Both the position numbers and the translations under genes were made by a program. Positions 46,801-58,060 of a DNA stretch of 64,000 bases are shown piece by piece (the first letter of the stretch is position 1; the number at the start of each line of letters is the position of its first letter). A model generated the notes under the pieces. It worked only from the letters and a program-made list of their open reading frames with translations, was not told where the DNA came from and made no database searches. Source of the DNA: Macrostomum lignano (lineage: Eukaryota); NCBI GenBank assembly GCA_002269645.1, contig NIVC01001201.1:186001-250000 (forward strand), given 5' to 3'.

Positions 46801-49800
46801 GGCACCCGACAGAGCCGCACTCGGTGCTGCCCAGCTGGCGACGCGGCTGCTTGTGGACCAGCAGCACTCAGCGGACTCAGCCTCGTGCGCAGTCCTACTG
46901 TCTGATGCGCGGCCACCTCCACTGCCTTAAATCTCAGCTGAGAAAGTCCGATCCTCGCCTGCTGTTTGCCTCCACCAGCGGCCTGGAATGCCTCGTTAAT
47001 CGGCCCGAGGATCGGCTGGTTGAGCTTCGCGATGTTATTGACAGGTGCGATTCTTCTATCCCTATTGTAATGTGAAATCCGAACTTGATTTCATTTTGAA
47101 ATGATTATAAAATCCTGCAATTCAGATATTTAGCTGATGTCAAACCAAGACGATCTTAGCATGATCCCTGCTCTTGTCCACCTAAGATAGTAGGCCTTTG
47201 ATTAATCAATTTCTAGTGATTTCTTTCACCACTGCCTCATTGCAGATTTTGCTTCGCGGTGCCTCCCGTGCTGGCCGGCGAGCCGTTTCTCTCCTGCCCT
47301 TGGCAGCAGCGCCAAGTCGCTGTCGAGCGCGAATCTGCAATCCGCAGCCAGAGCAGCCGGTGCGACCTGTTGCACCCGATCGCCAGTCGCCAAGCGGTGC
47401 AGTTCCCAGACGGCCGGCTGATTCAGTACGACTGCGGCAAGCTGCAGAGTCTGGATCTGCTGCTGAAACGACTAAAGCCTAAGGGCCACCGGGTGCTCAT
47501 TTTCACCCAGATGGCGCGCATGCTGGACATCCTAGAGCAGTTCCTGTCGCATCACGGCCACATCTACCTGCGGCTTGACGGCACAACTCGAGTTGAGCAG
47601 CGCCAGATTCTCATGGAAAGATTCAATGCTGATAGCCGATTTTTGTGTTCATTCTGAGCACTCGGTCTGGCGGCCTGGGCGTCAACCTCACCGGCGCCGA
47701 TACTGTGGTGTTCTACGACTCGGACTGGAACCCCACCATGGATGCGCAGGCTCAGGATCGCTGCCATCGCATCGGCCAGACTAGGGATGTTCACATTTAC
47801 AGGTGAGCAGGCCTAATGTCCTGTAATAATGTAGCCTATTTCATTCATTGCCGTCTCCCGCTTCCGAGACTTCTACCAATTAACTCAGTTGGAATTCATC
47901 GGCTGAAAAGTGACGGCTAACATTACATATTAATTGTAGCAGAGTAAATTTTCCTATTCTTGCTCCATTTCTGTAATAATTCCAGGCAAGAATAGGCAGA
48001 TGGCTTTGCAACAGTTGCTTTAAAAACTATTTTAGTGTCAACAGTTCTGTGCTCTGTGTATCTAAGCTAAACATAATAAGCATTGCACATTATTTTATCC
48101 AGGCTGATCAGCGAGAAACAGTCGAAGAGAACATTCTGAAGAAAGCCAACCAGAAACGCTGGCTAAACGATGTCGCCATTGAGGGAGGCAACTTCACCGC
48201 CGCTTTCTTTCAACAGAACACCATCAAGGAGCTGTTTTCTGAACCGACTGGCCTGGATGACTTGGTTGCCAAGAAGAAGACGCGCCTGGCTGCTGCTGAG
48301 CAGGAGCAGCAGGCGGAAGCTGAGAGTCGGCCGGGTATCGAAACGGTAATTTATTAAAGTTCATCGCTTGCTATTTATTGATTCTGTTTGTTATGCCTGC
48401 GTTTAGTTTTTATAAGGATTAAAAACAAAACAGGTGAGCTTCCTAATAAAAGGGGCGAATCAAATGATCATTGATCGATAGGAATGAATAAGCTTTCTTG
48501 AACCTATAATCAGACTTGACATTTTAAATCAACTGCGATTTGCTTCTGACCGATCCGCACGAATCCCCGCTTAACCCACAGGCCCTCGAAGAGGTGGAAG
48601 ACGAATCCGATCGGCAAGCAGCCGAGAAGGCCAAGAAGAGACTGTCGAAGAGCTGGCCGAATTTGATGAAGACATTCCCTGGGATGAGAACGAAGCCCTG
48701 CTTCGGCAGCGCGAGCATCGACTGGAGCGCAGGCTGGCCGCGTTAGAAAGCGAGGTTTGCTTTGCCTTAATGCGATTTTTGTGCTTTTATTCATTTCATT
48801 TGCTAAATAATGATAAATCCAGGGGAGTTCAGAGTCACGGTTCTGAACCAATAACTCGTGTCTTTGCCGTGCTTAGAATTCCGAGATTAAACTTCCATTC
48901 AGTGTGCGCTTTGACCAAATGCTTGCAACTGCTGCTATTGCTTAATGTTCGAGTGTTGGAGGCCGTGACTGAAACAGTAAAATCAATTAGTTCGACAGGG
49001 CATTCATGATGAAGCTTATCGCTTGGCCAGTCTGCAACAAATTGCGCTGAAGTGGTGCTGCAATGCGCGCTGCTTAAAGCGGCGGGACCCCGCATTGATT
49101 TTTGGGCAGACTATGCTATTCAACTAAGCGGCTTATTAGCTGCGGTCTGATCTAGCCCTATTGTACTGTAGCTTCCGTCTCAGTGTAATTAGAAATATTT
49201 TTATATTACTGCATATTGCAGTCCTTTTATTATTAAAACTCCCCTCCTTTGCCAATTGCCAGCTGTCTTCTCTGGAGCGCTACGGCTTGAGCTTCATCGA
49301 ATCCCATCAGGAGCTGATGATGAACTGGGAGCTTGAGCAGGCCGAGGTCAACATCGAGCAGTCCAAGCGCGAGTGGGAGCTGCAGCAGCTCAAGCAGCTT
49401 CGGCAGGAAGAGGAGCTGCGCGCCGAGCTGGAAGAAGACGACATGTTCATGTGCTACGGGGCCTACGACCCCGCCAGACAGGTACGGGAGCTTGCGCGCC
49501 AGATGGAGATCGAAGATGCGGATCATGACTTAAGGGTTGGAGGGGAGGAAGCTGCGGTTTCGAACGCGTCGCCGGACCGCGGACGGACAGCGGACCGACT
49601 GGTGTCCAGTCTGGGAATTCGCCAGGTGCAGCTGGCTGACGATTCCACGGGTGCTGGCATTGGTGCAGATGCGAACTCCACGCTAGCAGCGCGGCGACGA
49701 GCGAAAAAGATAAAGCGCCAACGGCGGGTGGCTGCCGAGACTGCGGCGCAGCAGAACCAATTGGCTTCTCCACTTCAGCAGGAGCAGCAGCGCCAGCAAC

Positions 49801-58060: not shown

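Follow-up and report, generated by a model that had tools for sequence, protein, structure and literature searches.

How does a flatworm separate H2A.Z exchange from H4/H2A acetylation? The separation of these two activities is a standing question in chromatin biology, and exchange (SWR1/SRCAP) and acetylation (NuA4/TIP60) are divided in yeast between two complexes, in vertebrates between two paralogous ATPases and in flies between two splice forms. The question is raised by a domino (dom) gene in a stretch of 64,000 nucleotides (nt) from Macrostomum lignano (GenBank assembly GCA_002269645.1, contig NIVC01001201.1, positions 186,001 to 250,000 of the forward strand), referred to here as the window, in which each position equals the record position minus 186,000. 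The original prediction held that this single gene makes both a SRCAP-like and a p400-like remodeler by means of an internal splice donor. Based on the analysis presented below, we consider it reasonably probable that a composite internal/terminal exon at 49263-50375 gives rise to a short and a long dom isoform.

The composite exon begins in phase 0 at 49263, where it is preceded by ...ttgccaattgccag/ (the slash marks an exon boundary here and below) and, over a longer upstream stretch, by ...gccaattgccag/. Its shared part, LSSLERY...YDPARQ, occupies 49263-49481 on the + strand, as do all dom features described here, and comprises 73 codons with phase 0 at both ends. This is followed directly by an internal phase-0 5' splice site, GTACGG (49482-49487; CAG/GTACGG), of which the GTA would encode Val if read through. 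Read-through begins Q/V(GTA)RELARQ, ends GFQNPR and terminates inside the same exon, so that the proposed DOM-B-like C-terminus (49482-50375) consists of 297 codons plus TAA 50373-50375, is rich in Q, P, A and S, and contains no SANT domain. The exon start, the donor and the read-through stop had all been predicted, and each coordinate was confirmed on the sequence. The read-through tail looks clearly like coding sequence: the segment stays open in only 5e-5 of mononucleotide shuffles, the two other frames are full of stops, and GC content drops from 0.53-0.65 ahead of the TAA to 0.26-0.36 directly past it. The first AATAAA past the stop, at 50883-50888 (+), is a candidate proximal poly(A) signal. 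With respect to the donor itself, GTACGG deviates at +4 from the GT[G/A]AG consensus of the species (PMC8629364); several constitutive dom donors deviate too, and donor strength alone is therefore no mark of regulation.

Comparison with arthropod orthologues provided the strongest new evidence on this exon. The protein homologues available for comparison were domino fragments of at most 777 amino acids (aa), with no full-length protein among them, and these fragments form two classes which split at the residue of the flatworm internal donor. The A-type fragments are P0008 (...EDAQNQ/IWLSDD..MPMWCPPTPP...SANT), Daphnia pulex P0018 (...DSVNQ/KWISMDG) and P0002 (...KTE/MWVS). B-type fragments are represented by Graphocephala (...EDAQNQ/VNNTP...RTRSRATVHIDLWTLDD), Rhynocoris (...DARNQ/VNN), Euphydryas (...SRAK/VRAR) and P0004 (...SYEQ/VPTPK), the last of these on an intron-free Logan contig which reads CAG/GTGCCT at that point. 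Val opens every B tail and corresponds to the codon of a read-through GTN donor.

The genomic dom locus of Daphnia pulex (L002, GL732545.1) has the same layout. Its exon starts ...caatag/TTGACTCCCGTTGAACGCTAC (LTPVERY) at the same codon as flatworm LSSLERY, and its internal donor, CAG/GTTAAG after ...DSVNQ, lies at the codon homologous to the flatworm donor. Read-through in Daphnia gives an open frame of 195 codons in which PRTRSRGTVNINLWTLD occurs, and the A exon follows 1.3 kilobases (kb) downstream as ...cacag/AAGTGGATT, starting KWISMDGLEEMP. Flatworm and crustacean thus have in common the 5' boundary of the exon, the codon and phase of the internal donor, and a distal exon which starts with (K/I)W. 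An arrangement at a similar position to that of Drosophila had been proposed; the correspondence proved closer still, to the same codon and phase in Daphnia. Striking convergence, which had been offered as one option, appears unlikely because both composite-exon boundaries, the phase and the first distal residues are common to the two animals. The two loci differ in that the Daphnia intron is 1.3 kb without a nested gene and the flatworm intron 5.6 kb with a beta-tubulin gene. The PRTRSRGTVNINLWTLD motif and the GRP AT-hook-like start of the Daphnia B tail are absent from the flatworm tail, and in the A path MPIWCPPTPP is present in Daphnia and missing in the flatworm, whose divergent SANT-like segment is a poorer SANT domain than that of Daphnia. 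In the Daphnia annotation (L002 4409-14134) dom is split into a 931-aa model (EP400_N/HSA/SNF2) and a 665-aa model (Helicase_C plus A tail), and the open B-type read-through tail is ignored.

The distal part of the flatworm gene is entered through a branch-like CTAAC (55080-55084), a pyrimidine-rich stretch and a CAG acceptor, which together span 55080-55097 (+). This acceptor is in phase 0 at 55098 (...CTAACcgtctccgagCAG/ATCTGG), and the predicted junction 49481/55098 reads YDPARQ/IWHPLELKENDHYVD; both the acceptor and the junction peptide were exactly as originally proposed. Distal exon A1 (55098-56603, +, donor CAT/gtgagt) comprises 502 codons and contains IWHPLELKENDHYVD, an SLFHR motif, a SANT-like segment (DNA ~55690-55880) and the Q-run QQQQQPQQQQ, with the Q-rich stretch EQQQQQPQQQQHSLHQQQLQ following the SANT-like segment at exon residues ~460-480. 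By BLASTP, A1 matched the arthropod A-type pre-SANT plus SANT region with E values of 1e-6 (P0008) and 2e-7 (Daphnia P0018), in an alignment spanning SLFHR/SLFDR and W-HE-Q-L-P-PNWDL-VN-R-YR. The EP400-type combination of a pre-SANT SLFDRP and a SANT pattern (W..ED..LQ..PNWDL..VN..R.YR) was recovered by way of these arthropod matches, and the arthropod A-type region is itself colinear with human EP400 2137-2436 (E 2e-74). These comparisons suggest that the distal tail is p400-like through an arthropod bridge rather than directly, the homology being weak but significant.

Two further exons complete the distal tail. Exon A2 (56713-57223, +, acceptor cctccag/, donor TGG/gtgagt) is rich in A, G, S and P, lies within an open frame at 56653-57249, ends in phase 1 and has a GC content at third codon positions (GC3) of 0.82. 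Exon A3 (57583-58060, +, acceptor ggccag/) has three open frames. A distal part running to 58060 had been predicted; however, the best sites for the last intron (57223/57583) lead to TGA 57780-57782, and TAG 58058-58060 lies in another frame. The frame of this TAG has the better GC3 signal over the last 270 nt, and codon-position GC favors a frame switch. This points to an ambiguous last exon, in which either a fourth 1-nt deletion or the use of weaker splice sites would be needed to reach TAG 58058-58060; such a deletion, at ~57700-57785, is likely. A 37-base-pair (bp) minisatellite (58088-59475) starts 28 nt past the distal stop, probably in the 3' untranslated region, and the first AATAAA/ATTAAA past this stop is found at 59899 and beyond.

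In the two-isoform arrangement that we favor, a single choice would determine the C-terminus. When the donor at 49482 is not used, translation would continue through GTA (Val) for 297 codons to the TAA, and the transcript would end at a proximal poly(A) site, for which AATAAA 50883 is the candidate signal; the short product would carry the HSA domain and split ATPase without SANT, like DOM-B/SRCAP. When the donor is used, a 5.6-kb intron containing the read-through tail, poly(A) signals and the tubulin gene would be removed and exon 55098 joined in phase, giving a long product with a pre-SANT plus SANT-like region and Q-run, like DOM-A/EP400. The outcome would be set by competition between splicing at the internal donor and proximal cleavage/polyadenylation downstream of the TAA. 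We infer that both mRNAs are produced in the worm. By analogy with Drosophila (PMC7239659), the long form may scaffold a Tip60/NuA4-type complex, and the short form may act in a SWR1-type complex that exchanges H2A.Z.

A number of observations weigh against this arrangement, beginning with the two tails themselves. The read-through tail gave no Pfam match, and its BLASTP similarity to other B tails ends at the branch point. Neither the arthropod motif RTRSRGxVxIxLWTLD nor RRRSADVEIR plus AT-hooks of SRCAP was matched when the tail was searched with regular expressions and a hidden Markov model (HMM) built from nine tails. The description of this tail as SRCAP-like therefore stands by position and by the absence of SANT, and finds no counterpart in tail motifs or homology. 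One alternative is that only the long spliced form is real, the read-through being intron retention or an unproductive transcript in which GC-richness happens to keep the frame open. The missing homology and motifs would be explained in this way, and the GC3 of the read-through tail, at 0.59, is below the 0.70-0.86 of neighboring exons. Set against this are the rarity of 297 open codons in the shuffles, the stops in the other two frames and an abrupt fall in GC from 0.56 to 0.26 exactly at the TAA; moreover, the Daphnia gene has an open, conserved frame in the homologous read-through, and in several insects the annotated protein ends there. We regard a gene with the long form alone as very unlikely.

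With respect to the distal tail, the flatworm SANT-like segment is very divergent. No Pfam match to SANT/Myb was obtained in the segment at E<=1, although the arthropod orthologues likewise fall below the Pfam cut-offs. A phmmer search of the PDB with the segment landed on the EP400 SANT domain (2362-2417) at non-significant E values of 0.28-1.8, and an AlphaFold2 model from a 3-row alignment had a predicted local distance difference test (pLDDT) score of 48, with helices only, and was unusable. The MPxW(C/T)PPTPP motif found just past the branch point is missing in the flatworm, where IWHPLELKE/NDHYVD aligns around the gap. The prediction of a SANT-like domain thus held with respect to the arthropod SANT region by BLASTP and failed in Pfam, with PDB matches that were non-significant. 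Searches with larger or adjacent queries added little: the whole A1 exon gave no EP400 match in the PDB (phmmer), and a 55-aa post-SANT segment gave nothing relevant there. An HMMER scan of exon A1 against 1.84e9 representatives returned one marginal low-complexity match and no annotated Macrostomum protein with the exon. Exact look-up of the 613-aa open reading frame (ORF) at 54783-56624 gave no record. A homology search with the junction peptide gave no match, poly-A/G low-complexity words having probably swamped the query.

Upstream of the switch, the domain content identifies the gene, and the assembled frame is the second point to be weighed. By sequence, the gene is an orthologue of domino/SRCAP/EP400, a domino/SWR1-type remodeler ATPase, as had been predicted: an HSA domain (Pfam E 4.1e-10, exon 2) lies N-terminal to the ATPase, the SNF2 N-lobe is recognized with E 2.5e-64 (Pfam SNF2-rel_dom), and SRCAP/domino fragments match the C-lobe and post-ATPase region at 57-67% identity. 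The ATPase lobes are split by a long insertion supplied by exons 5-6, and the nearest relatives are SRCAP/domino. The exon model was built by hand and has ten exons (40823-49481), the last of which is the shared part of the composite exon. Exon 1 (40823-41163) holds the ATG and N-terminal region and ends in phase 2 at donor TCG/gtaaaa. The HSA domain starts in exon 2 (41386-41806, acceptor caccag/, donor AAG/gtaagc), continues through exon 3 (41884-42024, 47 codons, phase 0 at both ends) and ends in exon 4 (42272-43903), to which Pfam also assigns the SNF2 N-lobe after an acidic linker. The end of the N-lobe and the start of the long insertion were placed in exon 5 (43993-44599) by splice sites, and the insertion continues in exon 6 (46639-47044), drawn from the hand model. 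The helicase C-lobe follows in exon 7 (47246-47802), succeeded by exon 8 (48103-48345) and exon 9 (48582-48754). Long open frames without Pfam match are also present on the dom strand at 27370-30727, 10-13 kb upstream of the dom ATG, and may represent a gene of their own or additional 5' dom exons.

As assembled, the dom reading frame is broken three times, in exons 7, 8 and 9, each time by the loss of 1 nt from a short A/T run, so that the assembly as it stands does not contain an uninterrupted frame; this too counts against a functional two-isoform gene. The first deletion lies at ~47637-47645 (cgaTTTTTg context; the frame switches after RFNADSR), the second at ~48114-48119 (gagAAAcag context; the switch is at RLISE(K), then TVEENILKK) and the third at ~48633-48641 (after AEKAKK). 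The GenBank dom coding sequence (1332 aa) terminates at TGA 47655-47657, a stop created by the first frameshift, and beyond 47657 the annotation contains tubulin alone, with neither of the dom tails nor the rest of the C-lobe. The public Mlig_3_7 annotation therefore cuts dom off at an assembly frameshift. With the three bases restored, the predicted sizes are ~1,581 aa for the shared part, ~1,878 aa for the short form and ~2,320-2,410 aa (in round figures 2,300-2,400 aa) for the long form; the product of about 2400 aa originally proposed is readable only after these three single-base corrections.

Such breaks might instead be real, this copy being one of the duplicates of a recent polyploidy and now in decay, which would make the arrangement a fossil. 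M. lignano is a hidden polyploid (PMC10468722), three frameshifts are crowded into 1.1 kb where the coding sequence is most conserved, with probably a fourth in the last exon, and the breaks persist despite Pilon polishing (PMC5730564). However, 1-nt deletions in short A/T runs are the typical PacBio consensus error, all 108 of the 108 columns conserved at >=95% in an alignment of 120 homologues are unchanged around the first two breaks (exons 7-8), no in-frame stops occur elsewhere in the copy, and the splice sites of the dom exons are intact. Because these conserved columns are intact and Mlig_3_7 was assembled from PacBio reads with Canu before Pilon polishing (PMC5730564), the three breaks are judged to be consensus errors of the assembly, not decay. 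The chance that this copy is a decaying one appears to us slight in the extreme.

The third point to be weighed is the content of the switch intron. The proposed 5.6-kb intron (49482-55097) harbors an intact, same-strand beta-tubulin gene (52628-54132, +) which the original prediction did not mention, with exons at 52628-52684, 52785-53249 and 53320-54132 and a 444-aa product containing the Pfam domains Tubulin and Tubulin_C. This product matches PAA70872.1 (BOX15_Mlig025496g1) exactly; its identity is 93-97% with Macrostomum lignano tubulins and at most 86% with those of any other taxon. The suggestion of a probable spiralian was right, the species being this free-living flatworm, and the tubulin comparison spoke against a dipteran or crustacean source, to which GC-rich coding sequence with poly-A/Q runs might have pointed. 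Tubulin copies of 96% identity on NIVC01000764.1 and NIVC01002660.1 have other neighbors and are not syntenic with dom, and the nested tubulin is a dispersed paralogue. Owing to its position, long-form transcripts must bypass at least two sets of 3'-end signals, which again tells against the long isoform. The Grudniewska 2018 supplements contained no SRCAP, EP400 or Mlig025496 entry.

The same intron gives rise to a serious alternative, namely that the gene has undergone fission: 55098-58060 would be a separate unit with its own promoter or, more likely, trans-spliced to a spliced leader (SL), and dom would make the short form only. The distal exons would possibly lie downstream in an operon-like unit with the beta-tubulin gene, and the spliced leader would have taken over the conserved acceptor, itself a relic, with the ATG at the end of the leader serving as start (ATG/ATC TGG). 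About 30% of M. lignano genes are trans-spliced to a 35-nt leader ending in ATG, and 15% are in operons as defined with a 1-kb distance threshold (PMC8629364). The alternative is serious because an SL-ATG would be in frame at the phase-0 acceptor 55098, a further observation on the opposing side, and because the tubulin stop is 966 nt from that acceptor, an interval in which neither AATAAA nor ATTAAA occurs; a nested same-strand gene also hampers long-range cis-splicing. On the other hand, the exon opens with (I/K/M)W, the residues that arthropod and EP400-colinear proteins show behind the cis junction, and a free-standing tail would be without the HSA domain borne by the Eaf1, EP400 and DOM-A scaffolds. 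The acceptor GAGCAG is unlike the [T/C]TNCAG motif enriched at M. lignano trans-splice sites (PMC8629364), and although the ORF exceeds 600 codons, no gene is called here in the annotation, which was guided by transcripts and SL data. Fission of the gene is in our estimation unlikely, and we continue to prefer the two isoforms of one gene. As a side possibility, the same acceptor may also serve an ATG-ending spliced leader, which would yield a free-standing SANT/Q-rich protein.

If a two-isoform gene is accepted, how old is the switch? Alternative splicing of dom orthologues to different C-termini has been described in honeybee, Nasonia, Harpegnathos (ant), Tribolium and spider (Scacchetti 2020, PMC7239659), and alternative dom C-termini have been called "wide-spread throughout the Arthropoda" (PMC7239659). 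This kind of switch is thus already known in arthropods, and the new value of the flatworm locus is phylogenetic; our literature search found no study of flatworm domino, SRCAP or EP400, nor any on other spiralians. An arrangement common to Spiralia and Ecdysozoa indicates that the fly-style switch probably predates the arthropod-flatworm split and was present in the protostome ancestor, and the architecture common to flatworm and crustacean would push the splice-form solution back to that ancestor at least.

Whether it goes back further was considered with vertebrate sequences. Human EP400 reads across the branch as ...LLTYTREDAYS-MEYV..MPLWTPPTPP..SLFDR..SANT...polyQ, whereas the alignment with SRCAP breaks off before the branch is reached. 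In woodpecker (bird) SRCAP (L003) an intron lies directly before LTPIERY, as in the flatworm, and an extra intron lies inside the exon. The original prediction of an ancestral bilaterian switch is therefore supported as far as the protostome ancestor, and the deuterostome data (the bird SRCAP boundary and EP400 colinearity) fall short of the rest. Tentatively, and as a proposal that is somewhat more doubtful than sound, the composite-exon switch may have been present in the protostome and probably the bilaterian ancestor, with vertebrate SRCAP and EP400 being its isoforms frozen into separate genes after duplication. Given the architecture common to flatworm and crustacean, isoform partitioning after duplication would be the simplest origin of SRCAP and EP400. 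If this is true, the fly and vertebrate solutions would be the ancestral and derived states of one system, contrary to the convergence suggested for them in the eLife digest to Scacchetti et al. (2020, PMC7239659). M. lignano is a transgenic, stem-cell model amenable to RNA interference, which makes the roles of the isoforms in neoblasts accessible.

The remainder of the window contains several other genes and repeats. Exons of an NFX1/shuttle craft-like gene are found at 1447-5996 (+), with NF-X1-type zinc fingers (Pfam zf-NF-X1, E ~2.5e-7), and minisatellites at 1992-2730, 2929-3457 and 4348-4841 break up the series. A 514-codon frame at 15699-17240 (-) resembles a neuronal-calcium-sensor or KChIP-like protein, in that a long low-complexity N-terminal part is followed toward the C-terminus by EF-hand pairs (Pfam EF-hand_7, E 2e-13). 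Mobile elements are represented by a DDE_3 (mariner/Tc1-like) transposase ORF of 301 codons at 22191-23093 (-) and by a fragment like a long interspersed nuclear element at 31954-33800 (-) with a reverse transcriptase (RVT_1, E 3.6e-22). An ORF pair at 24811-25796 (-) resembles reverse transcriptase by eye only, and its part at 24811-25272 has no Pfam match. Minisatellites with units of 11-46 bp make up about one fifth of the window (2-1294, 6332-8861, 9507-10614, 11064-11684, 12077-14929, 17614-20569, 58088-59475 and 63481-64000). An Rfam scan gave no match in the window.

Among known systems, the switch proposed here resembles in mechanism composite exons subject to splicing or intronic polyadenylation, such as that of the secreted/membrane switch of immunoglobulin mu, where a 5' splice site within the exon is in competition with a proximal poly(A) site and the C-terminus is altered. 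This likeness is mechanistic only. Compared with human EP400 and SRCAP, which are two separate genes with one fixed tail each, the flatworm has one gene with two predicted tails. A further close system is Drosophila dom, in which it is well established that one gene produces DOM-A and DOM-B with two C-termini (PMC7239659). The fly gene and the predicted flatworm isoforms are alike in a shared HSA domain and split ATPase, in a long form with SANT followed by a Q-rich region, and in a short form without a recognizable domain. They differ in the length of the shared part, 2,008 residues in Drosophila and ~1,581 in the flatworm, and the flatworm gene belongs to another superphylum (Platyhelminthes), has a far more divergent SANT-like segment and carries a beta-tubulin gene in the switch intron.

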